Positions 5,333-61,310 of a stretch of 64,000 nucleotides of DNA are shown piece by piece (the stretch's first letter is position 1; every line of letters starts with the position of its first letter). The notes under the pieces are model-generated. The model had not been told where the DNA came from. It was given only the letters and a program-made list of their open reading frames with translations, and ran no database searches. Both the position numbers and the translations under genes were made by a program. Source of the stretch: Hypanus sabinus (lineage: Eukaryota); the NCBI RefSeq assembly GCF_030144855.1, contig NC_082712.1:96286001-96350000 (forward strand). Direction: 5' to 3'.

Positions 5333-5396
5333 GGAAGGTGAAGGGAAGGGATACAGACAGGAGGTTTGGACAGGTACAATCCAGCTGCCAGAGGCT

Positions 5397-10806: not shown

Positions 10807-10920
10807 CAACTTCAATTTCATCATCTACACGTTCACAATAGGTCCCTTCATAGGGATCGGGGCAATCACATTCATCGTCATCTTCATCCCAGGTCCCTCC
10901 ATTCTGGCATGGATTTTTTT
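10807..10920 (-). CDS. EGF-like exon of MUC3/MUC12/MUC17-type membrane mucin (EKNPCQNGGTWDEDDDECDCPDPYEGTYCERVDDEIEV)
   Basis: Not in the ORF track. Acceptor tatttatacag| at 10921 and donor G|gtgagt at 10806; 114 nt, phase 1-1. The CQNGGTWD..CxC..YxG..CE motif is the first EGF-like module that follows the PTS region in MUC3/12/17. Confidence 0.85.
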
Positions 10921-11114
10921 CTGTATAAATAGATCATGAGTTTTATATGGGCATTTCTTTTGGATTGAGCTCACATTACAAGTTCCTCCTACAGACTGAA
11001 AACTGTACTGCACCTGAACAGATGCATCAATCTATCTTTAATCTGATGTTATGCACGATTCTTCTTGGCAGGAATATTCAATCATACAGAAGGTCCAAAG
11101 TTCACACACAATGG

Positions 11115-11190
11115 CTGACAGCATGGTAGTGTAGTCGTTAGCACAAAGCTTTACAATACCAGGGACCCAGGTTCAATTCCCACCACAGAC
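11115..11190 (+). mobile_element. tRNA-derived SINE head
   Basis: A-box-like tggtagtgtagtcgttag and B-box ggttcaattccc. Confidence 0.55.
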
Positions 11191-11419
11191 GCCGTTGTGA
11201 ATGGACAACCCCTCAGGTAATAACCTCCTCTGGATTCTCTCCGGTGTCAATATATACATCCACCACCTGCTTCCATGGCTTCACGTGACCCTGGTCAAGT
11301 GGGGGAAGAGGAGAGGGATAAGCAGGTACTACACTGTGTCTGAGTGTGACCTGTAGGCTGGGGGAGGGAAGGAGAACCTTACACATCCTTTGTTAGTGCC
11401 AAATCTACACCCCATCGCC

Positions 11420-17390: not shown

Positions 17391-17639
17391 TCATGTATGT
17401 TATTTATTATGTTCATGGTTTTCTGTTACTGTTGACCATCCAAAGTTCAACATGTTGTGTATTCAGAGATACACCACACCACTGTAGTAACTTGTGGTCA
17501 TTTGAGTTACTGTCATTTTCCTGTCAGCTTGAGCCAGTCTAGCCATTCTCGTTTGACCTCTCTCATTAACAAGGTGTTTTCACCCACGGATCTCCTGCTC
17601 ACTGGATGTTTTTTGTTTATCACACCATTCTCTGTAACC

Positions 17640-21060: not shown

Positions 21061-21319
21061 GTAACCCTTCATTATTGGACATCTTTGTAATCTTGATGCT
21101 GCATATTTTGCCACCAATATTTGGTTGTCCATATTCAGATTTTATTAATGATGTAACACAGCAGGATGGTTTGTAACTAACAAATAACACCAGAGATATT
21201 GAAAACATCCAGTGGTCAGTTAACATGTGGAGAAAGTTCTATAATTCAGGACAGGATGATACACAAATCAGACTATTTGCAGCAACATGAACAAACTTCA
21301 TAACAGAATCAACAATTAC

Positions 21320-24300
21320 CTGGTCTTTTAGTTGTGGTGGGACGCACAGTGGTCCGAGGAGTTGTAACGGCTGTCGACAACACCTGTTTATCGGTTGTTG
21401 AGGAGGAGGTCATTGTGGATGTCGTGAGGCTTGTTGAAGTAACTGTGGTTGGCACATTTGATGTACTGCTGGGTTTACCTGGTGGCTTTGCTGAAGTTCC
21501 TGTTGGTGTACTGGTTAGTGTAGGTGATGTGCTGGATGGTGTGCTGGACTCTATGGTCGGTTTACTGGTCACTGTAGTCGATGTGCTGGTCAGTGAGCTG
21601 GATTCTGTGGTCGATGAGCTGGACCCTATGGTTGGTATGCTGGACCCTGTGGTTGACGTACTGGATTCTGTAGTCAGTGTGCTGGAGCCTGTGGTCAGTG
21701 TGCTGGACACTGTGGTTTGCACACTGATCACTGTATTTGATGTGCTGGACTGTGCGGTCGTAGAGCTGGACTCTGTAGTCGGTGTGCTGGACAGCACACT
21801 TGATGTGCTGGATTCTGTAGTCGGTGTGCTGGACCCTGGGTGCGGTGAGCTGGTCTCTGTTGTCGATGTGCTGGACCCTGCAGTCGATGTGCTGGATTCT
21901 GGGTGCAGTGTGCTATACTCTGTGGTTGATGTACTGGATTCTGTGGATGATGTACTGGATTCTGTAGTTGGTATGCTGGACCCTGGGTGCGGTGTGCTGG
22001 ACTCTGTGGTCAGTGTGCTGGACACTGTGGTTTGCACACTGATCACTGTATTGGATGTGCTAGACTGTGCGGTCGGAGAGCTGGACTCTGTAGTCGGTGT
22101 GCTGGAATCTGTGCTGAGTGTGCTGGACACTGAAGTAGATGTGCTGGACTGTGTGGTCAGTGTGCTGGTCTGTGTTGTTGGTGAGCTGGATTCTGTGGTC
22201 GATGAGCTGGACCCTATGGTTGGTATGCTGGACCCTGTGGTTGACGTACTGGATTCTGTAGTCGGTGTGCTGGAGCCTGTGGTCAGTGTGCTGGACACTG
22301 TGGTTTGCACACTGATCACTGTATTTGATGTGCTGGACTGTGCGGTCGTAGAGCTGGACTCTGTAGTCGGTGTGCTGGACAGCACATTTGGTGTGTTGGC
22401 CCCTATGGTCGGTGTGCTGGACTCTGGGTGCAGTGTGCTATACTCTGTGGTTGATGAGCTGGACTCTGTAGTTGGTGTGCTGGACTCTCTGGTCAGTGTG
22501 CTGGACCCTGCAGTCGATGTGCTGGACAGCACATTTGATGTACTGGATTCTGCAGTCGGTGAACTGGACTCTGTGGTCATCGTGTTGGACCCTATGGTCA
22601 GGGTGCTGGACCCTGTGGTCAGGGTGCTGGACCCTGTGGTCAGGGTGCTGGACCCTGTGGTCAGGGTGCTGGACTCTGTTGTCGATGTGTTGAACCCTAT
22701 GGTCGGTGTGCTGGATTCTGGGTGCAGTGTGCTATACTCTGTGGTTGATGAGCTGGACTCTGTAGTTGGTGTGCTGGACTCTCTGGTCAATGTGCTGGAC
22801 CCTGCAGTCGATGTGCTGGACAGCACATTTGATGTACTGGACTCTGTTGTCGATGTGTTGTACCCTATGGTCGGTATGCTGGACCCTGTGGTCAGGGTGC
22901 TGGACTCTGTGGTCGGTATGCTGGACCCTGTTGTCAGGGTGCTGGTCTCTGTTGTCAATGTGTTGGCCCCTGTAGTCCGTGTGCTGGACTCTGGGTGCAG
23001 TGTTCTACACTCTGTGGTTGATGTACTGGACCCTGTGGTTGATGTACTGGATTCTGTAGTTGGTGTGCTGGATCCTGGGTGTGCTGTGCTGGACTCTGTG
23101 GTTTGCACACTGATCACTGTATTGGATGTGCTGGACTGTGCGGTCGGAGAGCTGGACTCTGTAGTCGATGTGCTGGACAGCACATTTGATGTACTGGACT
23201 CTGTTGTCGATGTGTTGTACCCTATGGTCGGTATGCTGGACCCTGTGGTCAGGGTGCTGGACTCTGTGGTCGGTATGCTGGACCCTGTGGTCAGGGTGCT
23301 GGACTCTGTGGTCGGTATGCTGGACCCTGTTGTCAGGGTGCTGGTCTCTGTTGTCAATGTGTTGGCCCCTGTAGTCCGTGTGCTGGACTCTGGGTGCAGT
23401 GTTCTACACTCTGTGGTTGATGTACTGGACCCTGTGGTTGATGTACTGGATTCTGTAGTTGGTGTGCTGGATCCTGGGTGTGCTGTGCTGGACTCTGTGG
23501 TTTGCACACTGATCACTGTATTGGATGTGCTGGACTGTGCGGTCGGAGAGCTGGACTCTGTAGTTGATGTGCTGGACTCTGTGGTGAGTGTGCTGGACAC
23601 TGAAGTAGATGTGCTGGACTGTGGGGTCAGAGAGCTGGACTCTGTGGTTGACGTACTGGATTCTGTAGTTGGTGTGCTGGAGCCTGTGGTCAGTGTGCTG
23701 GACACTGTGTTTTGCACACTGATCACTGTATTTGATGTGCTGGACTGTGCGGTCGTAGAGCTGGACTCTGTAGTCGGTGTGCTGGACCCTGGGTGCGGTA
23801 TACTGGACTCTGTGGTCATTGTGTTGGACCCTATGGTCGGTATGCTGGACACTGTGGTTGATGTGCTGGACTCTGTGGTCTGTGTGCTGGTCTCTGTTGT
23901 CGGTGAACTGAACTCTGTGGTCGTTGTGCTGGACCCTGTGGTTGGTGTGCTGGACTCTGTGGTTGGTGTGCTGGACCCTGTGGTTGGTGTGCTGGACTCT
24001 GTGGTCGGTGTGCTGGACTCTGTGGTCGGTGTGCTGGAGCCTGTGGTCAGTGTGCTGGTCTCTGTGGTCGATGTGTTGGCCCCTGTGGTCGGTGTGCTGG
24101 ACTCTGGGTGCAGTGTGCTATACTCTGTGGTTGATGTGCTGGACCCTGTGGTTGATGTACTGGATTCTGTACTCAGTGTGCTGGACCCTGGGTGCAGTGT
24201 GCTGGAGCCTGTGTTCGATGAGCTGGACACTGTGGTCAGTGTGCTGGACTCTGTGGTTGGCATACTGATTACTGTCGTGTATGTGCTGGACAGAGCAGTC

Positions 24301-27300
24301 AGAGAGCTGGACTCTGTGGTCAGTGTGCTGGTCTCTGTTGTTGGTGAGCTGGACTCTGTGATCGATGTACTGGACTGTATAGTCTGTGTGGTGCCTGTGC
24401 TGGACTGCGCTGTGGCTGTGCTGGACTCTGTGCTTCGCATACTGATTACGGCAGTGTATGTGCTGTACAGAGCGGTCGGAGAGATGGACTCTGTGACCGG
24501 TGCGTTGGACACTATGGTTGCTGAGCTGGACTCTGTGGATGGTGAGCTGGTCTTCGCGGTCGACGTGCCATGCTCACTGGTCACAGTGCTGCATTCTGTG
24601 TGGTCGGTCGGTGTGCTGGATTGTATGGTCTCTGTGCTGGACTGTGTTTTCAGTGCACTGGTCTCTCTGGTCAGTACACTCAAATCGGTGGTCGGTGTGC
24701 TGGACCCTGGGTGCGGTGTGCTGGACTCTGTGGTCAGTGTGCTGGACACTGTGGTTTGCACACTGATCACTGTATTTGATGTGCTGGACTGTGCGGTCGT
24801 AGAGCTGGACTCTGTAGTTGGTGTGCTAGACTCTCTGGTCAATGTGCTGGACCCTGCAGTTGATGTGCTGGACAGCACATTTGGTGTGCTGGATTCTGTA
24901 GTCGGTGTGCTGGACCCTGGGTGCAGTGTGCTGGAGCCTGTGGTCAGTGTGCTGGTCTCTGTGGTTGGTGTGTTGGCCCCTATGGTCAGTGTGCTGGATT
25001 CTGGGTGCAGTGTGCTATACTCTGTAGTCGATGAGCTGGACTCTGTAGTTGGTGTGCTGGACTCTCTGGTCAGTGTGCTGGACCCTGCAGTCGATGTGCT
25101 GGACAGCACATTTGATGTACTGGATTCTGCAGTCGGTGTGCTGGACCCTGGGTGCAGTGTGCTGGACTCTGTGGTCGATGTGTTGGCCCCTATGGTCCGT
25201 GTGCTGGACTCTGGGTGCAGTGTGCTATACTCTATGGTTGATGTACTGGATTCTGTGGATGATGTACTGGATTCTGTAGTCGGTGTGCTGGACCCTGGGT
25301 GCGGTGTGCTGGACTCTGTGGTCAGTGTGCTGGACACTGTGGTTTGCACACTGATCACTGTATTTGATGTGCTGGACTGTGCGGTCGTAGAGCTGGACTC
25401 TGTAGTTGGTGTGCTAGACTCTCTGGTCAATGTGCTGGACCCTGCAGTTGATGTGCTGGACAGCACATTTGGTGTGCTGGATTCTGTAGTCGGTGTGCTG
25501 GACCCTGGGTGCAGTGTGCTGGAGCCTGTGGTCAGTGTGCTGGTCTCTGTGGTTGGTGTGTTGGCCCCTATGGTCAGTGTGCTGGATTCTGGGTGCAGTG
25601 TGCTATACTCTGTAGTCGATGAGCTGGACTCTGTAGTTGGTGTGCTGGACTCTCTGGTCAGTGTGCTGGACCCTGCAGTCGATGTGCTGGACAGCACATT
25701 TGATGTACTGGATTCTGCAGTCGGTGTGCTGGACCCTGGGTGCAGTGTGCTGGACTCTGTGGTCGATGTGTTGGCCCCTATGGTCCGTGTGCTGGACTCT
25801 GGGTGCAGTGTGCTATACTCTATGGTTGATGTACTGGATTCTGTGGATGATGTACTGGATTCTGTAGTCGGTGTGCTGGACCCTGGGTGCGGTGTGCTGG
25901 ACTCTGTGGTCAGTGTGCTGGACACTGTGGTTTGCACACTGATCACTGTATTGGATGTGCTGGACTGTGCGGTCGGAGAGCTGGACTCTGTAGTCGGTGT
26001 GCTGGACTCTGTGCTGAGTGTGCTGGACACTGAAGTAGATGTGCTGGACTGTGGGGTCAGAGAGCTGGACTGTGTGGTCAGTGTGCTGGTCTGTGTTGTT
26101 GGTGAGCTGGATTCTGTGGTCGATGAGCTGGACCCTATGGTTGACGTACTGGATTCTGTAGTCGGTGTGCTGGAGCCTGTGGTCAGTGTGCTGGACACTG
26201 TGGTTTGCACACTGATCACTGTATTTGATGTGCTGGACTGTGCGGTCGTAGAGCTGGTCTCTGTAGTCGGTGTGCTGGACAGCACACTTGATGAGCTGGA
26301 TTCTGTAGTCGGTGTGCTGGACCCTGGGTGCAGTGTGCTGGAGCCTGTGTTCGATGAGCTGGACACTGTGGTCAGTGTGCTGGACTCTGTGGTTGGCATA
26401 CTGATTACTGTCGTGTATGTGCTGGACAGAGCAGTCAGAGAGCTGGACTCTGTGGTCAGTGTGCTGGTCTCTGTTGTTGGTGAGCTGGACTCTGTGATCG
26501 ATGTACTGGACTGTATAGTCTGTGTGGTGCCTGTGCTGGACTGCGCTGTGGCCGTGCTGGACTCTGTGCTTCGCATACTGATTACGGCAGTGTATGTGCT
26601 GTACAGAGCGGTTGGAGAGATGGACTCTGTGACCGGTGCGTTGGACACTATGGTTGCTGAGCTGGACTCTGTGGATGGTGAGCTGGTCTTCGCGGTCGAC
26701 GTGCCGTGCTCAGTGGTCACAGTGCTGGATTCTGTGTTGTCGGTCGGTGTGCTGGATTGTGTTTTCAGTGCACTGGTCTCTCTGGTCAGTACACTCAAAT
26801 CGGTGGTCGGTGTGCTGGACCCTGGGTGCGGTGTGCTGGACTCTGTGGTCAGTGTGCTGGACACTGTGGTTTGCACACTGATCACTGTATTTGATGTGCT
26901 GGACTGTGCGGTCGTAGAGCTGGACTCTGTAGTTGGTGTGCTAGACTCTCTGGTCAGTGTGCTGGACCCTGCAGTCGATGTGCTGGACAGCACATTTGAT
27001 GTACTGGATTCTGCAGTCGGTGAACTGGACTCTGTGGTCATTGTGTTGGACCCTATGGTCAGGGTGCTGGACCCTGTGGTCAGTGTGCTGGTCTCTGTGG
27101 TTGGTGTGTTGGCCCCTATGGTCGGTGTGCTGGACTCTGGGTGCAGTGTGCTATACTCTGTGGTTGATGAGCTGGACTCTGTAGTTGGTGTGCTGGACTC
27201 TCTGGTCAGTGTGCTGGACCCTGCAGTCGATGTGCTGGACAGCACATTTGATGTACTGGATTCTGCAGTCGGTGAACTGGACTCTGTGGTCATTGTGTTG

Positions 27301-30300
27301 GACCCTATGGTCAGGGTGCTGGACCCTGTGGTCAGGGTGCTGGACCCTGTGGTCAGTGTGCTGGACCCTGTGGTCAGGGTGCTGGACCCTGTGGTCAGGG
27401 TGCTGGACCCTGTGGTCAGGGTGCTGGACTCTGTTGTCGATGTGTTGAACCCTATGGTCGGTGTGCTGGATTCTGGGTGCAGTGTGCTATACTCTGTGGT
27501 TGATGAGCTGGACTCTGTAGTTGGTGTGCTGGACTCTCTGGTCAATGTGCTGGACCCTGCAGTCGATGTGCTGGACAGCACATTTGATGTACTGGACTCT
27601 GTTGTCGATGTGTTGTACCCTATGGTCGGTATGCTGGACCCTGTGGTCAGGGTGCTGGACTCTGTGGTCGGTATGCTGGACCCTGTTGTCAGGGTGCTGG
27701 TCTCTGTTGTCAATGTGTTGGCCCCTGTAGTCCGTGTGCTGGACTCTGGGTGCAGTGTTCTACACTCTGTGGTTGATGTACTGGACCCTGTGGTTGATGT
27801 ACTGGATTCTGTAGTTGGTGTGCTGGATCCTGGGTGTGCTGTGCTGGACTCTGTGGTTTGCACACTGATCACTGTATTGGATGTGCTGGACTGTGCGGTC
27901 GGAGAGCTGGACTCTGTAGTTGATGTGCTGGACTCTGTGGTGAGTGTGCTGGACACTGAAGTAGATGTGCTGGACTGTGGGGTCAGAGAGCTGGACTCTG
28001 TGGTTGACGTACTGGATTCTGTAGTTGGTGTGCTGGAGCCTGTGGTCAGTGTGCTGGACACTGTGTTTTGCACACTGATCACTGTATTTGATGTGCTGGA
28101 CTGTGCGGTCGTAGAGCTGGACTCTGTAGTCGGTGTGCTGGACCCTGGGTGCGGTATACTGGACTCTGTGGTCATTGTGTTGGACCCTATGGTCGGTATG
28201 CTGGACACTGTGGTTGATGTGCTGGACTCTGTGGTCTGTGTGCTGGTCTCTGTTGTCGGTGAACTGAACTCTGTGGTCGTTGTGCTGGACTTTGTGGTCG
28301 ATGTACTGGACTGTATAGTCTGTGTGGTAGGTGTGCTGGACTGTGTGGCCGTAGAGCTGGACTCTGTGGTTGATGTACTGGATTCTGTAGTCGGTGTGCT
28401 GGACCCTGGGTGCGGTGTGCTGGACTCTGTTGTCGATGTGTTGGACCCTATGGTCGGTATGCTGGACCCTGTGGTTGGTGTGCTGGACTCTGTGGTCGGT
28501 GTGCTGGACCCTGTGGTTGGTGTGCTGGACTCTGTGGTTGGTGTGCTGGACCCTGTAGTTGGTGTGCTGGACCCTGTGGTTGGTGTGCTGGACTCTGTGG
28601 TCGGTGTGCTGGAGCCTGTGGTCAGTGTGCTGGTCTCTGTGGTCGATGTGTTGGCCCCTGTGGTCGGTGTGCTGGACTCTGGGTGCAGTGTGCTATACTC
28701 TGTGGTTGATGTGCTGGACCCTGTGGTTGATGTACTGGATTCTGTACTCAGTGTGCTGGACCCTGGGTGCAGTGTGCTGGAGCCTGTGTTCGATGAGCTG
28801 GACACTGTGGTCAGTGTGCTGGACTCTGTGGTTGGCATACTGATTACTGTCGTGTATGTGCTGGACAGAGCAGTCAGAGAGCTGGACTCTGTGGTCAGTG
28901 TGCTGGTCTCTGTTGTTGGTGAGCTGGACTCTGTGATCGATGTACTGGACTGTATAGTCTGTGTGGTGCCTGTGCTGGACTGCGCTGTGGCCGTGCTGGA
29001 CTCTGTGCTTCGCATACTGATTACGGCAGTGTATGTGCTGTACAGAGCGGTCGGAGAGATGGACTCTGTGACCGGTGCGTTGGACACTATGGTTGCTGAG
29101 CTGGACTCTGTGGATGGTGAGCTGGTCTTCGCGGTCGACGTGCCGTGCTCAGTGGTCACAGTGCTGGATTCTGTGTGGTCGGTCGGTGTGCTGGATTGTA
29201 TGGTCTCTGTGCTGGACTGTGTTTTCAGTGCACTGGTCTCTCTGGTCAGTACACTCAAATCGGTGGTCGGTGTGCTGGAACCTGGGTGCGGTGTGCTGGA
29301 CTCTGTGGTCAGTGTGCTGGACACTGTGGTTTGCACACTGATCACTGTATTTGATGTGCTGGACTGTGCGGTCGTAGAGATGGACTCTGTAGTTGGTGTG
29401 CTAGACTCTCTGGTCCATGTGCTGGACCCTGCAGTTGATGTGCTGGACAGCACATTTGGTGTGCTGGATTCTGTAGTCGGTGTGCTGGACCCTGGGTGCG
29501 GTGTACTGGAGCCTGTGGTCAGTGTGCTGGACTCTGTTGTCGATGTGTTGGCCCCTATGGTCGGTGTGCTGGACTCTGGGTGCAGTGTGCTATACTCTGT
29601 AGTCAATGAGCTGGACTCTGTAGTTGGTGTGCTGGACTCTCTGGTCAGTGTGCTGGACCCTGCAGTCGATGTGCTGGACAGCACATTTGATGTGCTGGAT
29701 TCTGTAGTCGGTGTACTGGACTCTGTGGTCATTGTGTTGGACCCTATGGTCGGTGTACTGGACTCTGTGGTTGGTGTGCTGGACTCTGTTGTTGATGTGT
29801 TGGACCCTATGGTCGGTATGCTGGACTCTGTGGTTGGTGTGCTGGACTCTGTGGTTGGTGTGCTGGAGCCTGTGGTCAGTGTGCTGGTCTCTGGGTGCAG
29901 TGTGCTATACTCTGTAGTCAATGAGCTGGACTCTGTAGTTGGTGTGCTGGACTCTCTGGTCAGTGTGCTGGACCCTGCAGTCGATGTGCTGGACAGCACA
30001 TTTGATGTACTGGACTCTGTTGTCGATGTGTTGGACCCTATGGTCGGTGTGCTGGACTCTGTGGTTGGTGTACTGGTCTGTGTGGTCGGTGTGCTGGACC
30101 CTGTGGTCAAGGTGCTGGACTCTGTGGTCGATGTGTTGGCCCCTGTGGTCGGTGTGCTGGACTCTGGGTGCAGTGTGCTATACTCTGTGGTTGATGTACT
30201 GGACCCTGTGGTTGATGTACTGGATTCTGTAGTTGGTGTGCTGGACCCTGGGTGTGGTGTGCTGGAGCCTGTGGTCAGTGTGCTGGACACTGTGGTTTGC

Positions 30301-33300
30301 ACACTGATCACTGTATTTGATGTGCTGGACTGTGCGGTCGGAGAGCTGGACTCTGTAGTTGGTGTGCTAGACTCTCTGGTCAATGTGCTGGACCCTGCAG
30401 TCGATGTGCTGGACAGCACATTTGATGTACTGGACTCTGTTGTCGATGTGTTGGACCCTATGGTCGGTATGCTGGATCCTGTGGTCAGGGTGCTGGACTC
30501 TGTGGTCGATGTGTTGGCCCCTGTGGTCCGTGTGCTGGACTCTGGGTGCAGTGTTCTATACTCTGTGGTTGATGTACTGGACCCTGGTGATGATGTACTG
30601 GATTCTGTAGTTGGTGTGCTGGACCCTGGGTGCGGTGTGCTGGACTCTGTGGTTTGCACACTGATCACTGTATTGGATGTGCTGGACTGTGCGGTCGTAG
30701 AGCTGGACTCTGTAGTCGGTGTGCTGGACAGCACACTTGATGTGCTGGATTCTGTAGTCGGTGTGCTGGACCCTGGGTGCGGTGTACTGGACTCTGTGGT
30801 CAGTGTGCTGGTCTCTGTGGTTGGTGTGTTGGACTCTGTGGTCAGTGTGCTGGTCTCTGTTGTCGGTGAACTGGACTCTGTGGTCATTGTGCTGGACTTT
30901 GTGGTCGATGTACTGGACTGTATAGTCTGTGTGGTAGGTGTGCTGGACCCTGTGGTCGATGAGCTGGACTCTGTGGTGAGTGTGCTGGACCCTGCAGTCG
31001 ATGTGCTGGATTCTGGGTGCAGTGTGCTATACTCTGTGGTTGATGAGCTGGACTCTGTAGTTGGTGTGCTGGACTCTCTGGTCAGTGTGCTGGACCCTGC
31101 AGTCAATGTGCTGGACAGCACATTTGATGTACTGGATTCTGCAGTCGGTGTGCTGGACCCTGGGTGCAGTGTGCTGGACTCTGTTGTCGATGTGTTGGCC
31201 CCTATGGTCCGTGTGCTGGACTCTGGGTGCAGTGTGCTATACTCTGTGGTTGATGTACTGGACCCTGTGGTTGATGTACTGGATTCTGTGGATGATGTAC
31301 TGGATTCTGTAGTTGGTGTGCTGGACCCTGGGTGTGGTGTGCTGGAGCCTGTGGTCAGTGTGCTGGACACTGTGGTTTGCACACTGATCACTATATTTGA
31401 TGTGCTGGACTGTGCGGTCGGAGAGCTGGACTCTGTAGTTGGTGTGCTAGACTCTCTGGTCAATGTGCTGGACCCTGCAGTCGATGTGCTGGACAGCACA
31501 TTTGATGTACTGGACTCTGTTGTCGATGTGTTGGACCCTATGGTCGGTATGCTGGATCCTGTGGTCAGGGTGCTGGACTCTGTGGTCGATGTGTTGGCCC
31601 CTGTGGTCCGTGTGCTGGACTCTGGGTGCAGTGTTCTATACTCTGTGGTTGATGTACTGGACCCTGGTGATGATGTACTGGATTCTGTAGTTGGTGTGCT
31701 GGACCCTGGGTGTGGTGTGCTGGACTCTGTGGTTGGTGTACTGGTCTGTGTGGTCGGTGTGCTGGACCCTGTGGTCAAGGTGCTGGACTCTGTGGTCGAT
31801 GTGTTGGCCCCTGTGGTCGGTGTGCTGGACTCTGGGTGCAGTGTGCTATACTCTGTGGTTGATGTACTGGACCCTGTGGTTGATGTACTGGATTCTGTAG
31901 TTGGTGTGCTGGACCCTGGGTGTGGTGTGCTGGAGCCTGTGGTCAGTGTGCTGGACACTGTGGTTTGCACACTGATCACTGTATTTGATGTGCTGGACTG
32001 TGCGGTCGGAGAGCTGGACTCTGTAGTTGGTGTGCTAGACTCTCTGGTCAATGTGCTGGACCCTGCAGTCGATGTGCTGGACAGCACATTTGATGTACTG
32101 GACTCTGTTGTCGATGTGTTGGACCCTATGGTCGGTATGCTGGATCCTGTGGTCAGGGTGCTGGACTCTGTGGTCGATGTGTTGGCCCCTGTGGTCCGTG
32201 TGCTGGACTCTGGGTGCAGTGTTCTATACTCTGTGGTTGATGTACTGGACCCTGGTGATGATGTACTGGATTCTGTAGTTGGTGTGCTGGACCCTGGGTG
32301 CGGTGTGCTGGACTCTGTGGTTTGCACACTGATCACTGTATTGGATGTGCTGGACTGTGCGGTCGTAGAGCTGGACTCTGTAGTCGGTGTGCTGGACAGC
32401 ACACTTGATGTGCTGGATTCTGTAGTCGGTGTGCTGGACCCTGGGTGCGGTGTACTGGACTCTGTGGTCAGTGTGCTGGTCTCTGTGGTTGGTGTGTTGG
32501 ACTCTGTGGTCAGTGTGCTGGTCTCTGTTGTCGGTGAACTGGACTCTGTGGTCATTGTGCTGGACTTTGTGGTCGATGTACTGGACTGTATAGTCTGTGT
32601 GGTAGGTGTGCTGGACCCTGTGGTCGATGAGCTGGACTCTGTGGTGAGTGTGCTGGACCCTGCAGTCGATGTGCTGGATTCTGGGTGCAGTGTGCTATAC
32701 TCTGTGGTTGATGAGCTGGACTCTGTAGTTGGTGTGCTGGACTCTCTGGTCAGTGTGCTGGACCCTGCAGTCAATGTGCTGGACAGCACATTTGATGTAC
32801 TGGATTCTGCAGTCGGTGTGCTGGACCCTGGGTGCAGTGTGCTGGACTCTGTTGTCGATGTGTTGGCCCCTATGGTCCGTGTGCTGGACTCTGGGTGCAG
32901 TGTGCTATACTCTGTGGTTGATGTACTGGACCCTGTGGTTGATGTACTGGATTCTGTGGATGATGTACTGGATTCTGTAGTTGGTGTGCTGGACCCTGGG
33001 TGTGGTGTGCTGGAGCCTGTGGTCAGTGTGCTGGACACTGTGGTTTGCACACTGATCACTATATTTGATGTGCTGGACTGTGCGGTCGGAGAGCTGGACT
33101 CTGTAGTTGGTGTGCTAGACTCTCTGGTCAATGTGCTGGACCCTGCAGTCGATGTGCTGGACAGCACATTTGATGTACTGGACTCTGTTGTCGATGTGTT
33201 GGACCCTATGGTCGGTATGCTGGATCCTGTGGTCAGGGTGCTGGACTCTGTGGTCGATGTGTTGGCCCCTGTGGTCCGTGTGCTGGACTCTGGGTGCAGT

Positions 33301-36300
33301 GTTCTATACTCTGTGGTTGATGTACTGGACCCTGGTGATGATGTACTGGATTCTGTAGTTGGTGTGCTGGACCCTGGGTGTGGTGTGCTGGACTCTGTGG
33401 TTGGTGTACTGGTCTGTGTGGTCGGTGTGCTGGACCCTGTGGTCAAGGTGCTGGACTCTGTGGTCGATGTGTTGGCCCCTGTGGTCGGTGTGCTGGACTC
33501 TGGGTGCAGTGTGCTATACTCTGTGGTTGATGTACTGGACCCTGTGGTTGATGTACTGGATTCTGTAGTTGGTGTGCTGGACCCTGGGTGTGGTGTGCTG
33601 GAGCCTGTGGTCAGTGTGCTGGACACTGTGGTTTGCACACTGATCACTGTATTTGATGTGCTGGACTGTGCGGTCGGAGAGCTGGACTCTGTAGTTGGTG
33701 TGCTAGACTCTCTGGTCAATGTGCTGGACCCTGCAGTCGATGTGCTGGACAGCACATTTGATGTACTGGACTCTGTTGTCGATGTGTTGGACCCTATGGT
33801 CGGTATGCTGGATCCTGTGGTCAGGGTGCTGGACTCTGTGGTCGATGTGTTGGCCCCTGTGGTCCGTGTGCTGGACTCTGGGTGCAGTGTTCTATACTCT
33901 GTGGTTGATGTACTGGACCCTGGTGATGATGTACTGGATTCTGTAGTTGGTGTGCTGGACCCTGGGTGCGGTGTGCTGGACTCTGTGGTTTGCACACTGA
34001 TCACTGTATTGGATGTGCTGGACTGTGCGGTCGTAGAGCTGGACTCTGTAGTCGGTGTGCTGGACCCTGGGTGCGGTGTACTGGACTCTGTGGTCAGTGT
34101 GCTGGTCTCTGTGGTTGGTGTGTTGGACTCTGTGGTCAGTGTGCTGGTCTCTGTTGTCGGTGAACTGGACTCTGTGGTCATTGTGCTGGACTTTGTGGTC
34201 GATGTACTGGACTGTATAGTCTGTGTGGTAGGTGTGCTGGACTGTGTGGTCGTAGAGCTGGACTCTGTGGTTGATGTACTGGATTCTGTAGTCGGTGTGC
34301 TGGACCCTGGGTGTGGTGTGCTGGAGCCTGTGGTCAGTGTGCTGGACTCTGTGGGTGGCACACTGATCACTGTATTCGATGTGCTGGACTGTGGGGTCGG
34401 AGAGCTGGACTCTGTGGATGGTGAGCTGGTCTTCGCGGTTGACGTGCCGTGCTCAGTGGTCACAGTGCTGCATTCTGTGTGGTCGGTCGGTGTGCTGGAT
34501 TGTATGGTCTCTGTGCTGGACTGTGTTTTCAGTGCACTGGTCTCTCTGGTCAGTACACTCAAATCGGTGGTCGGTGTGCTGGACCCTGTGTGTGGTGTGC
34601 TGGAGCCTGCGGTCGCTGTGCTGGACTTTGTTGTTGGTGAGCTGGATTCTGTGGTCGATGAGCTGGACCCTGTGGTCGATGAGCTGGACTCTGTGGTGAG
34701 TGTGCTGGACCCTGCAGTCGATGTGCTGGATTCTGGGTGCAGTGTGCTATACTCTGTGGTTGATGAGCTGGACTCTGTAGTTGGTGTGCTGGACTCTCTG
34801 GTCAGTGTGCTGGACCCTGCAGTCAATGTGCTGGACAGCACATTTGATGTACTGGATTCTGCAGTCGGTGTGCTGGACCCTGGGTGCAGTGTGCTGGACT
34901 CTGTTGTCGATGTGTTGGCCCCTATGGTCCGTGTGCTGGACTCTGGGTGCAGTGCGCTATACTCTGTGGTTGATGTACTGGACCCTGTGGTTGATGTACT
35001 GGATTCTGTGGATGATGTACTGGATTCTGTAGTTGGTGTGCTGGACCCTGGGTGTGGTGTGCTGGAGCCTGTGGTCAGTGTGCTGGACACTGTGGTTTGC
35101 ACACTGATCACTATATTTGATGTGCTGGACTGTGCGGTCGGAGAGCTGGACTCTGTAGTTGGTGTGCTAGACTCTCTGGTCAGTGTGCTGGACCCTGCAG
35201 TCGATGTGCTGGACAGCACATTTGATGTGCTGGATTCTGCAGTTGCTGTGCTGGACCCTGGGTGCGGTGTGCTGGACTCCGTTGTCGATGTGTTGAAATC
35301 TATGGTCGGTATGCTGGACCCTGTGGTCAGTGTGCTGGTCTTTGTTGTTGGTGAGCTGGATTCTGTGGTCGATGAGCTGGACCCTATGGTCGTTATGCTG
35401 GACCCTGTGGTTGACGTACTGGATTCTGTAGTCGGTGTGCTGGACCCTGGGTGCGGTGTTCTGAACTCTGTGGTCATTGTGTTGGACCCTATGGTCGGTA
35501 TGCTGGACTCTGTGGTTGATGTGCTGGACTCTGTGGTCGTTGTGCTGGACTGTATAGTCTGTGTGGTGGGTGTGCTGCACTGTGTGGTCATAGAGCTGGA
35601 TTCTGTAGTTGGTGTGCTGGACCCTGGGTGCGGTGAGCTGGATTCTGTAGTTGGTGTGCTGGACCCTGGGTGCGGTGTGCTGGATTCTGTAGTCGGTGTG
35701 CTGGACCCTGGGTGTGGTGAGCTGGATTCTGTAGTTGGTGTGCTGGATCCTGGGTGTGGTGTGCTGGACTCTGTGGTTTGGACACTGATCACTGTATTCG
35801 ATGTGCTGGACTGTGCGGTCATAGGGCTGGACTCTGTGGTGAGTGTGCTGGACACTGAAGTAGATGTGCTGGACTGTGGGGTCAGAGAGCTGGACTGTGT
35901 GGTCAGTGTGCTGGTCTGTGTTGTTGGTGAGCTGGATTCTGTGGTCGATGAGCTAGACACTGTATTCGGAGTGCTGGAGTCTGTGGTTGGTGTGCTGGAC
36001 CCTGCAGTCGGTGTGCTAAACAGTGCATTTGATGTGCTGGATTCTGTAATCGGTGAGCTGGACCGTGTGATCAGTGAGCTGGATGCTGCAGTCAGTGTGT
36101 TGGACTCTTTTGTCTGTGTGTTGGAGTTTGTGGTTGGTGTGCTGGACTCTGTGGTTGGCATACTGATTACTGTTGTGTATGTGCTGGACAGAGCGGTCGA
36201 TGTGCTGGAGCCTGTGGTCAGTGTGCTGGACTCTCTGGTTGGTGAGCTCAAATCAGTGGTTGGTGCGCTGGACTCTGTGGTGGTCATTGTGCTGGATTCT

Positions 36301-36550: not shown

Positions 36551-36556
36551 CTGTGG

Positions 36557-48100: not shown

Positions 48101-51100
48101 GTGTACTGGTCTCTGTGGTGGATGTGCTGGTCGGTGTACTGGTCACAGTGGTGGATGTGCTGGTCGGTGTACTGGTCTCTGTGGTCAATGTGCTGGTCAG
48201 TGTACTGGTCACTGTGGTCGATGTGGTCGGTGTACTGGTCTCTGTGGTGGATGTGCTAGTCAGTGTACTGGTCACTGTGGTCGATGTGGTCGGTGTACTG
48301 ATCTCTGTGGTCGATGTGCCGGTCGGTGTACTGGTCACTGTGGTCGATGTGCTGGTCGGTGTACTGGTCACTGTGGTCGATGTGCTGGTCGGTGTACTGG
48401 TCACTGTGGTCGATGTGGTCGGTGTACTGGTCTCTGTGGTTGATGTGCTGGTCAGTGTACTGGTCACTGTGGTCGATGTGGTCGGTGTACTGGTCTCTGT
48501 GGTTGATGTACTGGTCGGTGTACTGGTCAATGTGGTTGATGTGGTTGGTATACAGGTCTCTGTGGTCGATGTGCTGGTCGGTGTACTGGTCTCTGTGGTC
48601 GATGTGCTGGTCAGTGTACTGGTCACTGTGGTCGGTGTACTGGTCTCTGTGTTGGATGTGCTTGTTGGTGTACTGGTCTCTGTGGTCGATGTGCTGGTCA
48701 GTGTACAGGTCACTGTGGTGGATGTACTGGTCGGTGTACTGGTCACTGTGGTCGGTGTACTGGTCTCTGTGGTCGATGTGCTGATTGGTGTACTGGTCAC
48801 TGTGGTCGATGTACTGGTCGGTGTACTGGTCACTGTGGTCGATGTACTGGTCGGTGTACTGGTCTCTGTGGTCGATGTGCTGGTCGGTGTACTGGTCTCT
48901 GTGGTCGATGTACTGGTCGGTGTACTGGTCATTCTGATCGTTGTGCTGGTTGGTGTACTGGTCTCTGTGGTCAATGTGGACGGTGTACTGGTCACTGTGG
49001 ACGATGTGGTCGGTGTACTGGTCTCTGTGGTCAGTGTACTGGTCTCTGTGCTCAATGTGCTGGTTGGTGTACTTTTCTCTGTGTTCGATGTACTAGTCGG
49101 TGTAATGGTTACTGTGGTAGGTGTTGTTGTCAGTGTACCGGTTACTATGGTCTGTGTGTTAGTGAGTGTACTGGTCACTATGCTAAATGCACTGGTTGGT
49201 GTACTGGTCTCTGTGGTCGATGTGCTGGTCTGTCTACTGGTCTCTGTGGTCGATGTGCTGGTTGGTGTACTGGTCACTGTGGTGGATGTGCTGGTCGGTG
49301 TACTGGTCTCTGTGGTTGGTGTACTGGTCGGTGTACTGGTCTCTGTGGTCGATGTGCTGGTCGGTGTACTGGTCTCTGTGGTCAATGTGCTGGTCAGTGT
49401 ACTGGTCACTGTGGTGGATGTGCTGGTTGGTGTACTGGTCTCTGTGGTCGATGTGCTGGTTGGTGTACTAGTCTCTATGGTCGATGTACTGGTCGGTGTA
49501 CTGGTCACTGTGGTCGATGTGCTGGTCGGTGTACTGGTCACTGTGGTCGATGAGCTGGTCGGTGTACTGGTCACTGTGGTCGATGTGCTGGTTGGTGTAC
49601 TGGTCACTGTGGTCGATGTGGTCGTTGTACTGGTCTCTATGGTCGATGTGGTCGGTGTACTGGTTGGTGTACTGGTCTCTGTGGTGGATGTGCTGGTCAG
49701 TATACTGGTCTCTGTGGTGGATGTGCTGGTCGGTGTACTGGTCACTGTGGTTAATGTGCTGGTCGGTGTACTGGTCTCTGCGGTCGATGTACTGGTCGGT
49801 GTACTGGTCTCTGTGGTGGATGTGCTGGTCGGTGTACTGGTCACTGTGGTCGATGTGGTCGTTGTACTGGTCTCTATGGTCGATGTGGTCGGTGTACTGG
49901 TCTCTGTGGTTGGTGTGCTGGTCGTTGTACTGGTCTCTATGGTCGATGTGGTCGGTGTACTGGTCACTGTGGTTGATGTGCTGGTCGGTGTACTGGTCTC
50001 TGTGGTCGATGTGCTGGTCAGTGTACTGGTCTTTGTGGTCGATGTGCTGGTCAGTGTACTGGTCTTTGTGGTTGATGTGCTGGTCGGTGTACTGGTCACT
50101 GTGGTCGGTGTGGTCGGTGTACTGGTCTCTGTGGTCGATGTGCTGGTCTGTGTACTGGTCACTGTGGTTGATGTGCTGGTCAGTGTACTGGTCTCTATGG
50201 TCGATGTGGTCGGTGTACTGGTCACTGTGGTTGATGTGCTGGTCGGTGTACTGATCTTTGTGGTTGATGTGCTGGTCAGTGTACTGGTCACTGTGGTCGG
50301 TGTGGTCGGTGTACTGGTCTCTGTGGTCGATGTGGTCGGTGTACTGGTCTCTGTTGTTGATGTACTGGTCGGTGTAATGGTCTCTGTGGTCGATGTGCTG
50401 GTTGGTGTACTGGTCACTGTGGTTGATGTGCTGGTCGGTGTACTGGTCACGGTGGAGGATGTGGTCAGTGTACTGGTCTCTGTGGTCGTTCTGCCGGTTG
50501 GTGTACTGGTCTCTGTGGTCGATGTACTGGTCTCTGTGGTTGATGTGCTGGTCAGTGTACTGGTCACTGTGGTCGATGTGCTGGTCGGTGTACTGGTCTC
50601 TGTGGTCGATGTGCTGGTCAGTGTACTGGTCTCTGTGGTCGATGTGCTGGTCGGTGTACTGGTCTCTGTGGTTGACGTGCTGGTCAGTGTACTGGTCACT
50701 GTGGTCGGTGTACTGGTCTCTGTGGTCGATGTGGTCGGTGTACTGGTCTCTGTGGTGGATGTGCTGGTCAGTGTACTGGTCTCTGTGGTCATTGAGCTGG
50801 TCGGTGTACTGGTCACTGTGGTCGATGTGCTGGTCGTTGTACTGGTCTCTGTGGTTGGTGTGCTGGTCGGTGTACTGATCTCTGTGGTCAATGTGCTGGT
50901 CGGTGTACTGGTCTCTGTGGTTGGTGTGCTGGTCGGTGTACTGGTCTCTGTGGTCGATGTGCTGGTCGGTGTACTGGTCTCTGTGGTCGATGTGCTGGTC
51001 GGTGTACTGGTCACTGTGGTTGGTGTGCTGGTCGGTGTACTGGTCTCTGTGGTTGGTGTGCTGGTCAGTGTACTGGTCTCTGTGGTCGATGTGCTGGTCG

Positions 51101-52525
51101 GTGTACTGGTCTCTGTGGTCGATGTGCTGGTCGGTGTACTGGTCACTGTGGTGGATGTGCTGGTCGGTGTACTGATCTCTGTGGTCGGTGTGCTGGTCGG
51201 TGTACTGGTCTCTGTGGTCGATGTGCTGGTCGGTGTACTGGTCACTGTGGTGGATGTGCTGGTTGGTGTACTGGTCTCTGTGGTTGATGTGCTGGTCGGT
51301 GTACTGGTCACTGTGGTCGATGTGGTCGGTGTACTGGTCTCTGTGTTGGATGTGCTGGTCGGTGTACTGGTCTCTGTGGTCGGTGTCCTGGTCAGTGTAC
51401 TGGCTGATGTTATGGTTGGTGTACTTGTTACAGCGGTGAATGTAGTGCTCGTTGTTATCGTCCCTGTAGTCGTTGTGGTTTCTATGCTGGTGTCTGTAGT
51501 TGTGGTGGTTTTGCTGGTTGTCACACAGACCCATACGCACTCCTCTGTAGTTGATTCACTCGTCAGTGTGCTGGTCCCTCTGGTTGAAGTGCTGGACTCT
51601 GTGGTTTGCACACTGATCACTGTATTTGTTGTGCTGGACTGTGTGGTCATAGGGCTGGACTCTGTAGTTGATGTGCTAGACTCAGTGGTGAGTGTGCTGG
51701 ACACTGAAGTAGATGTGCTGGACTGTGGGGTCAGAGAGCTGGACTGTGTGGTCAGTGTCCTGGTCTGTGTTGTTGGTGAGCTGGATTCTGTGGTCGATGA
51801 GCTAGACACTGTATTCGGAGTGCTGGACTCTGTGGTTGGTGTGCTGGACCCTGCAGTCGGTGTGCTAAACAGTGCATCTGATGTGCTGGATTCTGTAATC
51901 GGTGAGCTGGACCGTGTGATCAGTGAGCTGGATGCTGCAGTCAGTGTGCTGGACTCTTTGGTCTGTGTGTTGGAGCTTGTGGTTGGTGTGCTGGAGTCTG
52001 GGTGTGGTGTGCTGGAGCCTGTGGTCAGTGTGCTGGACTCTGTGGTTGGCATACTGATTACTGTCGTGTATGTGCTGGACAGAGCGGTCGATGTGCTGGA
52101 GCCTGTGGTCAGTGTGCTGGACTCTCTGGTCGGTGAGCTCAAATCAGTGGTTGGTGTGCTGGACTCTGTGGTTGGTGCGCTTGACTGTATTGTTGGTGCG
52201 CTGGACTCTGTGGTGGTCATTGTGCTGGATTCTGCAGTTGTTATGCTGTCCTGTGCAGTTGATGTGCTAGATTGAGTGATTGGTGTGCTGGATTGTGTGT
52301 TTGGTGTGCTGGACCCTGTGGTCACTGAGCTGGATTCTGTGGTCAGAGTGCTGGATTCTGTGGTCAGAGTGCTGGATTCTGTGGTCGGAGAGCTGGATTC
52401 TGTGGTTGGAGTGCTGGAGTCTGTGGTCGATGTTCTGGACTCTGTGGTTGATGTTCTGGACTCTGTGGTCGGAGTGCTGGACATCTTGATTGATGTATTT
52501 GATTCTGTGGTCAGTTTGCTGGGCC
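42101..52525 (-). CDS. Mucin PTS exon B (10,425 nt, 3475 codons; TESS-type start, then [12 protein letters not shown] repeats); chimeric exon
   Basis: Track ORF 41985..52598 is open. Acceptor ttttctatgtttctattgaccacag|G at 52526-52528 and donor TCAG|gtaaac at 42100. Length divisible by 3, phase 1-1. Confidence 0.8.
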
Positions 52526-52531
52526 CTGTGG

Positions 52532-52960
52532 TCAATAGAAACATAGAAAACTTACAGCACAATACAGGCCCTTCAGCCCACAAAGTTGCACCAAACATGT
52601 CCCTACCTTAGAAATTACTGGGCTTATGCATAGCCCTCTAATTTTCTGCACCATGTACCTATCCAAAAGTCTCTTAAAAGTCCCTATCATATCCGCCTCC
52701 GCCATCATTGCCAGCAGCCCATTCCGCACACTCACCACTCTCTGAGTAAAAAACTTGCCCCTGGCATCTCCTCTGTACCTACTCCCCAGCACCTTAAGCC
52801 TGTGTCCTCTTGTGGCAACAATTTCAACCCTGGGAAAAAAGCCTCTGACTATCCACACAATCAATGCCTCTCATCATCTTGTACACCTCTATCAGGTCAC
52901 CTCTCATCCTCCATCACTCCAAAGAGAAAAGGCCGAGTTCACTCAAACATTTTTCATAAG
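52532..52960 (-). mobile_element. CR1 LINE 3' fragment inserted in mucin repeats, copy 2
   Basis: Near-identical to 36557-36985, with the same junctions. Confidence 0.85.
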
Positions 52961-58100: not shown

Positions 58101-58210
58101 GCTCCACATTGAATCTCCACGTCTTAGTACCAAATCATTCTAACAACCTGCAGTAGATCTCTGCCAGGCCTCAGTTATCAGGTGAAAGGAATAACATAAA
58201 AGTAGTTTAC

Positions 58211-59071
58211 CTGAACTGGACACTGTAGTTGCTGAACTGACCTCCGTGGTGATCTTCTTGGTTGTACTGATCATTGATGTGCTGGTCGGCTCATTGGACA
58301 GTGTGGGTTTGGTCGATGTAGCAGTCAGCTTGCTTGACAGTGTGGTTGATGTGGTGGCTTGAGATCTGGACTCTGTGGCAATCTTGATTGTACTGGTCCT
58401 TGTTGATGGGTTGGTCACCGTGGGAGACACACTGGCAGCTGAACTGGACTCAGAGCCTAGTGTAGTGCACAATGTGCTGAAGAATGTGGTGGGTGCACTG
58501 GCCGGTGTGGAGGACTGTGTGATTGGAATACAGATCATCGTACAGGTCACTGGACTCATGCTGGTCACTGTGGTAGATGTACTGGTCGGTGGACTGGTCA
58601 CTGTGGTCGATGTGCTGGTCGGTGTACTGGTCACTGTGGTCGGTGTACTGGTCACTGTGGTTGATGTACTGGTCGGTGTACTGGTCACTGTGGTCGATGT
58701 GCTGGTCGGTGTACTGGTCTCTGTGGTCGATGTGGTCGGTGTACTGGTCTCTGTGGTCGATGTGCTGGTCAGTGTACTGGCCGATGTTATGGTTGGTGTA
58801 CTTGTTACAGTGGTGAATGTAGTGCTTGTTGTTATGGTCCCTGTAGTCGTTGTGGTTTCTATGCTGGTGTCTGTAGTTGTGGTGGTTTTGTTGGTTGTCA
58901 CACAGACCCAAACACACTCCTCTGTGGTTGATTCACTCGTCAGTGTGCTGGTCCCTCTGGTTGAAGTGCTGGACTCTACACCTGGTGTTTGTGTTGAAGT
59001 AATGCCAGCAATGTACGTCTTGTACTTTGTTTGGGTTTTGCTCAGTTGAGAGTCAGAAAATCCTCCAAGAA
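58211..59071 (-). CDS. Mucin PTS exon A (287 codons; VLGGFSDSQLSKTQTKYKTY...[10 protein letters not shown]...VTCTMICIP...TTVSSS)
   Basis: Acceptor ctttattcaag| at 59072 and donor TCAG|gtaaac at 58210. 861 nt, phase 1-1, open and Thr/Ser-rich; overlaps track ORF 58140..58901. Confidence 0.8.
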
Positions 59072-61243
59072 CTTGAATAAAGCAAAGGAAAAGAGCAACA
59101 GTTTTTAACGGTTTCCATTTTGAACATTTTCACATGGCACAACTAATCTTGTAGAAAGCTTTATCTGTATATTTTTTCAAGTTTTGTAATAAAACTAACT
59201 GAAAGAATATCACAGATGAACCCAATACATCCAAGTATACATATCAAAAAGAGGGTTGGGGTGGTTCGGCTGGTAAGACTTGATATAGGATTGGAAGGTG
59301 TCGAACTCAGGAGGGTAGAGTTATATTGCAAGGGTTAAAAAAACTTTGATGCAAGTCACATACAGGTGTGTAAATAGTATCCAGGATGTGGGGTGCAAAT
59401 TACAACAGGAGTTAGGAAAGGCATGCAAGAGAAGGCAGGAGAACAAAGTTCAGAAAGAAATAACAAATCAGCCATGATGAAATGGTGGAGCAGACTCGAT
59501 GGTCGGAATGGCCTAAGTCTGTCGCTATGTCTTGTGATATTTATCTGTTATTGCTGACAAGTCATTGGTAATCTTTGCCCCGATAATCCAGCATTTAACA
59601 GAGAGATAGAATTTCTGCAGTCCTCTTTTATTGGAGAGGAATCAATATCTAAGACAAAACTTTTCAATACTCTTTTGTGCCTCAGCTGAGTGTTGTAGCT
59701 AAATTCAGCTGCTAATCATTAAATTAAATTCTGAAATGCCAGAAAGACCTGGGTGTCATTGTGCATAATAAGCAAAAGGTTTGTTTGCAGTTACAGCAAG
59801 TTATTGCAAAAAGTAACAATAAGTTCATGGCTTTGAGAACAGAGTGTAAACGTATGCAAGTTATTCTCTGTTGTGTGTGTCGGTGTTGGTTCCCCTTTAT
59901 CTCAGGAAGAATGTTCAGAGAAGAGTTTCATGACTAATTCCAGAAAAGAGCGAGGAACAGTTGGACAGGTTAGGGATGTGTCTGCTGATATTTCACAGTA
60001 TGCAGGTAATCTGAGAGATCTTGACTGGGTGATTCAGCAATGCTTAATATCATTTCCAGTACATAAGTGTAAAGGAGGATGAAATAATTGTTACTCCTGA
60101 TCTGATGCAGTATATAAAAACAAGATAAATAAAACAAAAATACAAACACAATAGATATAAATGCAGAAGATAGTTTCTATATTTTCATTCTATTTACATA
60201 AAATGATGTTTGGTACAAGAGTGTACATAATGTAACTTTAGGGGAAACGATAAAGTAGTGGTGGTGTGGTGGGTTCGTGGGTGGAGTATTGATTAGCCTT
60301 ACAGTCTAGGGAAAGTAACTATTTTTGAGTCTGGTGTTCATGGTGTGGATGCTACATAGTCTTCTCCCAGAGTTGGGAACCTTTGGAACTCTCTTCCTTG
60401 TTATACAGTGAAAACAGAGTTTTTGAGGAAATTTAAGGCTGAAAATAGATTGGAATGTGGTAATGAGTTTACAGTTAAATCAGGCATGATCTTATTGAAA
60501 ATGAGAGGGACATGAAAAAACAAATAGTTTAACTTCCCCTCCTACCTCATATATTTGTTGAGGACATTTTTAAGGATGGGACAAGGAATGAAGGATTTCA
60601 GATCTGTTAATAGCCTGGAATTATTTGAATTGATCAGGAGTTAGCAGAAGATGTTTGAGATCTTTAAATAGTGTTAGAAACTGTCAAGTGTTTTAACAGT
60701 TTAGGACCTTTTAACTAACAGTGGCTAGAAACTCTGGGAATAATTTTAATCTCCTCCACCCAATGCAACATTAGTAAGGTATTTCAGTCAGACTCTTGTT
60801 ATGAACATGACTTCAGATTTCTATTTAGCTGGAGTTTAAAAGAATTAGCTAACCCCCTTCCTATTTCGATTGGTTTGAATGAGTTGTGTTCAGGAAACCC
60901 AGAACTGAAACGTTACATAATTGACAGGGTTCTTTTTAACAGATGAAAATAAAAATGGTTTCCAGACTGAAATTGTGAAAGTGACAAGCAGATTGATTTA
61001 TCAGCTCCATCCTGTATTTATTATTCAGTCAGTTGGGTTCTTTGTATTGTTTGCTTGACCGGGGTGAAGTGAACTTTTTGCTCCAGCTTTCTGTATATCC
61101 AAGGTTTATCTATCCTCTTCACACTGCGCCTGAAACTTGTGCATCCCATTCATATTGGCAACAATGTCTATCACAGGCTTCAGATAAATACAAATGCAAA
61201 TCTCACAAAATATTTTGAGAATATAGATTATATTGAAACTTAC

Positions 61244-61310
61244 CTAAGATTGTAGAAAAATAGAGACAGCAGTAATATATAGTGTTTATCCTGCATATTC
61301 CTCTTTTCAT
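61244..61310 (-). CDS. Mucin gene, first coding exon (signal peptide MKRGICRINTIYYCCLYFSTIL)
   Basis: ATG at 61310 in an AAA-ATG context. The exon has a ttccttcag acceptor at 61336-61338 and a G|gtaagt donor at 61243. 67 nt gives phase 1. Basic N-terminus plus hydrophobic core, continuing in frame as VLGG-FSDSQ in the next exon. Confidence 0.8.

Follow-up and report, generated by a model that had tools for sequence, protein, structure and literature searches.

Here we describe a locus in the stingray Hypanus sabinus that is probably a real and apparently intact giant gene for a mucin-type glycoprotein, in which the number of exons coding for the Pro-, Thr- and Ser-rich (PTS) domain was raised by one tandem duplication; we put the probability of this reading at about 0.7. 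The gene is proposed on the minus strand of a 64,000-nt stretch (assembly GCF_030144855.1, NC_082712.1:96,286,001-96,350,000, forward strand), which we call the window and whose coordinates are used throughout. Its product would consist of a signal-peptide-like start, about 8,840 Ser/Thr/Pro-rich repeat residues and an EGF-like module with four cysteines, the frame continuing to the left of the window. On present evidence the gene is unremarkable among giant mucins, being of a general kind already known. Errors of assembly and annotation are routine in giant mucins, and a gap-free locus of ~50 kb with an open frame of 26.7 kb can serve as a reference for elasmobranch mucosal biology.

Gene model and coding constraint

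The model comprises five coding exons, which are a minimum, as the gene goes on to the left of the window. They and the two introns central to the argument are as follows.

61244..61335, minus strand: ATG exon, with a 25-nt leader, the ATG at 61310, 67 coding nt (61310-61244) and the donor TAG/GTAAGT after 61244
58211..59071, minus strand: exon 2, 861 nt, phase 1-1, placed by frame and splice scores
52526..58210, minus strand: intron 2, 5,685 nt
42101..52525, minus strand: exon 3, 10,425 nt, phase 1-1, a probable chimera
36551..42100, minus strand: intron 3, 5,550 nt, a paralogue of intron 2
21320..36550, minus strand: exon 4, 15,231 nt, phase 1-1
10807..10920, minus strand: EGF-like exon, 114 nt, phase 1-1

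All introns begin with GT and end with AG, and the exons join in phase 1 into a single stop-free frame of 26,698 nt (8,899 codons plus 1 nt). The preliminary description of this DNA, made from the letters alone, had proposed these five exons, and its coordinates, lengths, intron ends and phase all check out. Splice sites were scored with crude consensus matrices of our own, which are approximate and are not a published scorer. By these matrices the donors score 7.6-11.0 (95th and 99th percentiles of the window 4.9 and 8.2) and the acceptors 3.6-5.7 (99th percentile 3.9), and each proposed site outscores all nearby candidates. The one comparable alternative, a donor 31 nt upstream of 58211 and of 42101 (score 7.5), would disrupt the frame and was discarded. 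In a mechanical list of open reading frames (ORFs) the two largest exons appear as giant ORFs at 41985..52598 (3,537 aa) and 21309..36623 (5,104 aa), both in regions with a strong strand-asymmetric composition.

An indication that the exons are under selection comes from a comparison with the introns between them. The PTS frame contains 0 stops in 26.5 kb, against 44-251 stops per giant exon in the two other minus-strand frames, and the tandem-repeat periods in the exons are all multiples of 3 (21, 33, 42, 63, 72, 87, 93, 114 and 135). Introns 2 and 3 carry decayed arrays of the same repeat types (~54,900-52,946 and ~38,800-36,971, minus strand), which can be thought of as fossils of PTS sequence. 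Here the periods include 23, 56, 89, 112, 122, 212 and 222, the PTS-like reading jumps between frames, and ~1.9 kb of any single frame contains 7 to 15 stops or more. This contrast in stops and periods is what purifying selection on the exons predicts and, at the level of sequence, indicates that the exons are under selection, with the fossils as a built-in neutral control.

The two fossils have decayed to different degrees. That of intron 2 retains an open PTS stretch of 529 aa (54532-52946), and the copy in intron 3 (37,882-36,971), which is more decayed, survives as separate pieces of 50-304 aa. Upstream of the fossils lie acceptors of moderate score (3.5-3.6), at 55113 and 55040 in intron 2 and at 39010 and 38937 in intron 3; they could be remnants of ancestral exon starts or sites of poison exons.

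Opposite the mucin exons the plus strand holds shadow ORFs at 21334-36342 (5,002 aa), 42265-47220 (1,651 aa) and 47221-52275 (1,684 aa). Their translations are nonsense rich in Trp, Cys, Gly, Val and Leu and form a trap for ORF-based annotation. The 5,002-aa plus-strand frame is probably a consequence of the amino-acid composition of the PTS frame.

The predicted product has the composition of a mucin. Thr makes up 38.7%, Ser 27.4%, Pro 6.8% and Glu 5.9% of the 8,899 aa (Ser, Thr and Pro together 72.9%), the Ser/Thr/Pro-rich repeat region spans ~8,800-8,840 residues, and there are ~5,900 potential O-glycosylation sites. The PTS domain begins ~30 residues past the signal-peptide-like segment and is, as in mucins generally, a long Ser/Thr/Pro-rich domain of tandem repeats. 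The von Willebrand D (VWD) assemblies that precede the PTS domain in the gel-forming mucins (MUC2/5/6/19) are not found at the N-terminus, and exon 2 has no Pfam match. Such a product would form a stiff, densely O-glycosylated rod on an epithelial surface, ~2 micrometres long if each glycosylated residue contributes ~0.25 nm. With an EGF-like module after the PTS domain, a cell-surface architecture of juxtamembrane module and anchor would be the most likely continuation.

Each PTS exon has its own repeat structure. Exon 2 opens with a unique N-terminal piece of 32 aa and closes with a unique Ser/Thr-rich tail; between them, two Cys islands, the first of CxxxC type, enclose a 33-nt (11-aa) PTS repeat in ~9 copies. 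Exon 3 is mostly a 33-nt (11-aa) array of ~262 copies, and in exon 4 a 21-nt (7-aa) unit of STPTTES type is repeated ~709 times, with higher-order structure, ahead of a unique Ser/Thr/Pro-rich stretch of ~90 aa that ends the exon.

Three kinds of island interrupt or border these arrays. CxxxC pairs (CVWVC, CTMIC) and a lone Cys flank the 11-aa arrays, at residues 75/79 and 199/203/224 in exon 2 and, copied along with the duplicated unit described below, at residues 639/643 and 3674/3678/3699 in exon 3; the odd number of cysteines per unit could permit intermolecular disulphides. In exon 4 an identical non-consensus island of 37 aa, ESSSATIVSNAPVTESISPTALYSTYTAVISMRSTES, occurs at residues 6266, 7079 and 7791, and the spacings of 813 and 712 residues point to higher-order repeats of ~2.1-2.4 kb within the 21-nt array. 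Finally, a non-PTS island of ~45 residues at 47,080-47,300 (minus strand, exon 3) breaks the 11-aa array and leaves the coding frame open. It partly resembles the alternative frame of the repeat (DQ.TD/HIDH), the other two frames stop there, and it coincides with the gap between the plus-strand shadow ORFs at 47220/47221.

At the 5' end, the ATG exon encodes MKRGICR followed by an 18-residue, mostly hydrophobic stretch (best 10-aa Kyte-Doolittle mean 2.26) and has the highest-scoring donor of the model (11.0). No other ATG exon of the window combines a strong phase-1 donor with both a hydrophobic core and a charged start. First exons could also be placed at 63.0-63.25 kb, but these lie inside a reverse-transcriptase fragment, have weaker donors and were set aside. 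A very strong acceptor, TTTTTGTTTCCTTCAG followed by G (score 9.0), stands at 61335, 25 nt upstream of the ATG. The ATG exon is thus probably internal, and a non-coding first exon is to be expected further upstream of 61335. Between 61311 and 61440 (minus strand) there is also an upstream ORF of 25 codons, its ATG near 61,385 and its TAA one base ahead of the main ATG, which could be regulatory, subject to the position of the transcription start.

Probable tandem duplication and the origin of exon 3

The preliminary description had taken the PTS domain to be split over three symmetric exons. Three phase-1/phase-1 exons are indeed present, but their number appears to be the result of a young tandem duplication and not of an ancient modular design. 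Introns 2 and 3 are paralogous, the donor context is the same in exons 2 and 3, and the acceptor context is the same in exons 3 and 4. In global alignments the tails of exons 2 and 3 are identical at 349 of 350 positions, the unique parts of the two introns are 98.0-99.4% identical, and the two copies of a fragment at the 3' end of each intron, with the acceptor, are 97.9% identical; the two ends of the duplicated unit are just 95-96% identical. A BLAST identity of 93.7-94% for the introns was rejected as an estimate of divergence, as it is distorted by the repeat fossils.

Exon 3 itself shows where the copies were joined. Its first ~310 residues (52525 to ~51,589) are built of 21-nt repeats and have their paralogue in the head of exon 4; the remainder, 51,600-42,101, is paralogous to exon 2, beginning with 'ESSTSTRG...' and continuing up to the donor. 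It can be matched to exon-4-type sequence as far as 51,589 and to exon 2, at 96.7%, from 51,600, and the two matches overlap at the following site.

51589..51600, minus strand: duplication junction, 12 in-frame nt common to exon-4-type and exon-2-type sequence

On this evidence exon 3 would be a chimera from one tandem duplication that ran from within exon 2, of which it took the greater part, across the intron into the head of the giant exon, and the gene before the duplication would have had one small and one giant PTS exon. The symmetry of exon 3 follows from this origin, because exon 4 supplied its acceptor phase and exon 2 its donor phase, and these two were formerly spliced together. If the reading is correct, a mucin gained a whole new 10-kb PTS exon by a single duplication across an intron, and the locus provides a clean natural example of a mucin acquiring an in-frame, skippable exon that is symmetric by construction. 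Because every internal exon is symmetric, exon skipping could, as far as structure goes, yield isoforms of different length, and a transcript that skips exon 3 would be the pre-duplication mRNA restored.

The copies are not identical in structure. Exon 3 has ~9 kb of the 33-nt array against ~0.3 kb in exon 2, and the array units, ~19% diverged, differ more than the flanks do. Two accounts are possible: an old long array that has been mostly lost from exon 2, or gene conversion that has homogenised the flanks. The window contains no N, so that no assembly gap lies beneath the duplication; as far as the letters go, the structural differences between the copies and the lack of gaps argue against an assembly artefact.

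Intron 2 consists of a unique part of 3.1 kb, then the PTS fossil, and last a retrotransposon-tail-like fragment (52,945-52,526) reaching as far as the acceptor. In both introns this ~420-nt fragment, which we take to be a retrotransposon tail, sits between the PTS fossil and the acceptor (52,526-52,945 and 36,551-36,970, minus strand, in sense orientation). It encodes a peptide, RGHRLKV...GDARGKFFTQRVV, with no Pfam match. With the fragment in this position, exon 3 and exon 4 each have their acceptor where an inserted element ends. The giant ORFs' own in-frame ATGs are found inside the inserted element, 73 nt upstream of these acceptors (52,598 and 36,623, minus strand), and are probably meaningless.

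The EGF-like module, searches and alternative explanations

A module of EGF type after the PTS domain, as first proposed, is borne out, although its score of 16.3 bits is below the Pfam EGF cut-off of 21.5. The exon has 37 complete codons, and its best match in the PDB is Notch1 EGF12 (27.5 bits, E 3e-5), the alignment pairing its 'NPCQNGGTW' with the 'NPCQNGGTC' of solved EGF modules. Its four cysteines align to C2, C4, C5 and C6; with Trp at the C3 position and C1 absent, the C1-C3 disulphide is absent as a pair. The exon ends in an acidic tail (…CERVDDEIEV). Its atlas neighbours all carry EGF-type Pfam families and fall in generic EGF clusters, and the PDB matches include no mucin. An AlphaFold model of the 37 residues has a pLDDT (predicted local distance difference test) of 72, and a Foldseek search of this model against Swiss-Prot models returned generic EGF only (E >= 1.8) and no mucin.

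Several observations weigh against the reading of a real, intact gene. The splice scores come from approximate matrices, which limits their weight, and the signal peptide of the preliminary description can be upheld as a signal-peptide-like start, judged from charge and hydropathy alone. Openness by itself is weak evidence in repeats of this kind, because the plus strand also holds an open frame of 5,002 aa. A SEA or transmembrane anchor is not seen in the window. Run searches found neither exon 2 nor the 3' end of exon 4 in any RNA run. Four runs on 55,900-61,800 proved to be DNA of related animals, in short contigs that are 95-99% alike and nowhere join 61244 to 59071. These contigs cover introns and exons equally, and a word share of ~0.25 in five runs, these four among them, does not reflect exon-only RNA coverage; DNA runs without the intron 1 joint say nothing on expression and are no evidence against it.

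Protein searches likewise retrieved no homologous or self protein at the lengths covered (275-8,885 aa), which also counts against the reading. An exhaustive, profile-free search of the unique last 300 aa of exon 4 against 1.84 billion representatives gave three weak low-complexity matches only. Word-index searches scored on the unique C-terminus of exon 4 returned nothing at lengths of 275-875 and 2,792-8,885 aa and, at 877-2,791 aa, a single spurious match to a Ser/Thr-rich kinase linker. Beyond ~8,900 aa, outside these lengths, there may be an annotated full-length product.

The model could also be an artefact in part, with the 16-kb duplication misassembled, the locus unexpressed or recently dead, or the giant ORFs used separately. 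The near identity of the copies (98-99.7% in unique parts) is consistent with misassembly, as are the lack of RNA in the run searches and of an annotated product at the lengths searched with a locus that is silent or dead, and both giant ORFs begin with their own ATG (52598, 36623). However, several features argue against a misassembly: a 33-nt array of 0.3 kb in one copy and 9 kb in the other, a chimeric in-frame junction with a 12-nt overlap, unit ends only 95-96% identical, and a gap-free window. The 26.5 kb of stop-free repeats with periods of 3n beside decayed fossils argue for ongoing selection, and the internal ATGs have no charged n-region and stand 73 nt upstream of the best local acceptors. 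We therefore consider an artefact improbable, and a real gene with one added PTS exon remains the preferred reading.

To which family such a gene would belong is a separate question. It may be a true SEA-type member of MUC3/12/17, an enterocyte-glycocalyx mucin whose SEA domain, second EGF, transmembrane segment and PDZ-binding tail lie just to the left of the window; we regard this as a tentative possibility. The order of signal-peptide-like start, PTS domain and EGF-like module fits the family (PMC13643018), and the size is within its range, since the complete human assembly has PTS exons of 15.9, 39.3 and 32.4 kb (PMC9578598). As human PTS exons reach 39.3 kb, the stingray PTS domain is not exceptional in size. 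Human MUC3A, MUC3B, MUC12 and MUC17 have a signal peptide where the stingray gene has a signal-peptide-like start; in both cases this leads straight into a giant PTS domain of tandem repeats with an EGF-like module behind it, and the PTS exons are of comparable size.

Against membership, MUC3/12/17 have the PTS domain in a single large exon, at a locus between ACHE and TRIM56 (PMC13643018), whereas the stingray gene has three PTS exons (two before the duplication), and its repeat units are 7 and 11 aa compared with 17 aa in MUC3A/B. The EGF-like domains of transmembrane mucins have six cysteines, the last five conserved, and are followed by SEA in MUC3/12/17 (PMC13643018); judged by this description in a review, the four cysteines found here would differ. 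The SEA, second EGF, transmembrane segment and PDZ tail of the human 7q22 SEA-type mucins have no counterpart in the stingray window, and the EGF exon is closest to Notch and coagulation-factor EGFs, with no mucin among its PDB or Swiss-Prot-model matches. The MUC3 cluster is moreover reported to have "first emerged in amphibians" (PMC9578598), and its homologues "seem to be missing in chicken as well as in fishes" (PMC1552070).

Alternatively, the product may be another EGF-bearing mucin-like surface or secreted protein: MUC13-like (EGF-SEA-EGF-EGF-TM, TM being the transmembrane segment), HEG1-like (PTS-EGF-TM) or a lineage-specific elasmobranch mucin. This too is possible and on the doubtful side. 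Muc13 is a transmembrane mucin present in fish, with PTS, EGF, SEA, two EGF and transmembrane segments, and HEG, with PTS, EGF and transmembrane segments and no SEA, adjoins MUC13 in chicken and mammals (PMC1552070). The EGF exon is generic in every search, and a multi-exon PTS domain is known from chicken Muc13, for which length control by splicing has already been proposed (PMC1552070). In chicken Muc13, as in the stingray gene, the PTS domain is spread across several in-frame exons, but there each small exon holds one repeat unit, in contrast to the two giant arrays (10.4 and 15.2 kb) found here, and the extra PTS exon of the stingray, unlike those of chicken Muc13, would stem from one segmental duplication across an intron. 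HEG1 (heart of glass) is similar in that EGF-like domains come after a Ser/Thr-rich mucin-like region, and it continues into a transmembrane segment (PMC1552070); HEG lacks SEA, and no sequence link between it and the stingray gene was found. Nothing specific ties the gene to either MUC13 or HEG1, and no homologue was retrieved. The PTS region of HEG1 is far shorter and non-tandem, and we know of no Trp-for-Cys3 variant in MUC13 or HEG1.

The MUC3/12/17 label of the preliminary description is thus a reasonable if tentative guess, and a MUC13- or HEG-like protein or a lineage-specific EGF mucin is about as likely. The module ahead of SEA in human MUC3 and MUC12 has an 'NGG-x-W' motif, four cysteines and an acidic stretch. 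We treat this likeness as a lead that is not independent of the preliminary description; string searches of the literature for 'NGG-x-W' found no relevant paper. The more specific proposal, a genuine cartilaginous-fish member of the MUC3/12/17 lineage whose juxta-SEA module is a four-Cys, Trp-containing EGF variant, is one we find doubtful. If membership holds, the origin of this enterocyte-glycocalyx mucin family would shift from amphibians to the jawed-vertebrate ancestor, and if the missing C-terminal exons are of the MUC3/12/17-type SEA-EGF-TM kind, the published view of an amphibian origin would need revision.

Downstream region and transposable elements

No SEA, second EGF or transmembrane exon occurs within the window, where bases 1-10,806 contain transposon ORFs only; their absence is explained by the 10.8 kb downstream of the EGF exon being transposons. 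No flanking genes, such as the ACHE and TRIM56/SERPINE1 that would mark a MUC3/12/17 locus, lie within the window. The features of this region are a long interspersed nuclear element (LINE), a long terminal repeat (LTR) retrotransposon and a tandem repeat between them.

5452..10075, minus strand: near-complete LINE with ORF1 zinc knuckle, endonuclease, reverse transcriptase and zf-RVT, filling the intron downstream of the EGF exon
1214-4000, minus strand: pol of a chromodomain LTR retrotransposon, in the same orientation as the gene
4952-5331: tandem repeat of 22 nt x 17, between the LINE and the LTR element

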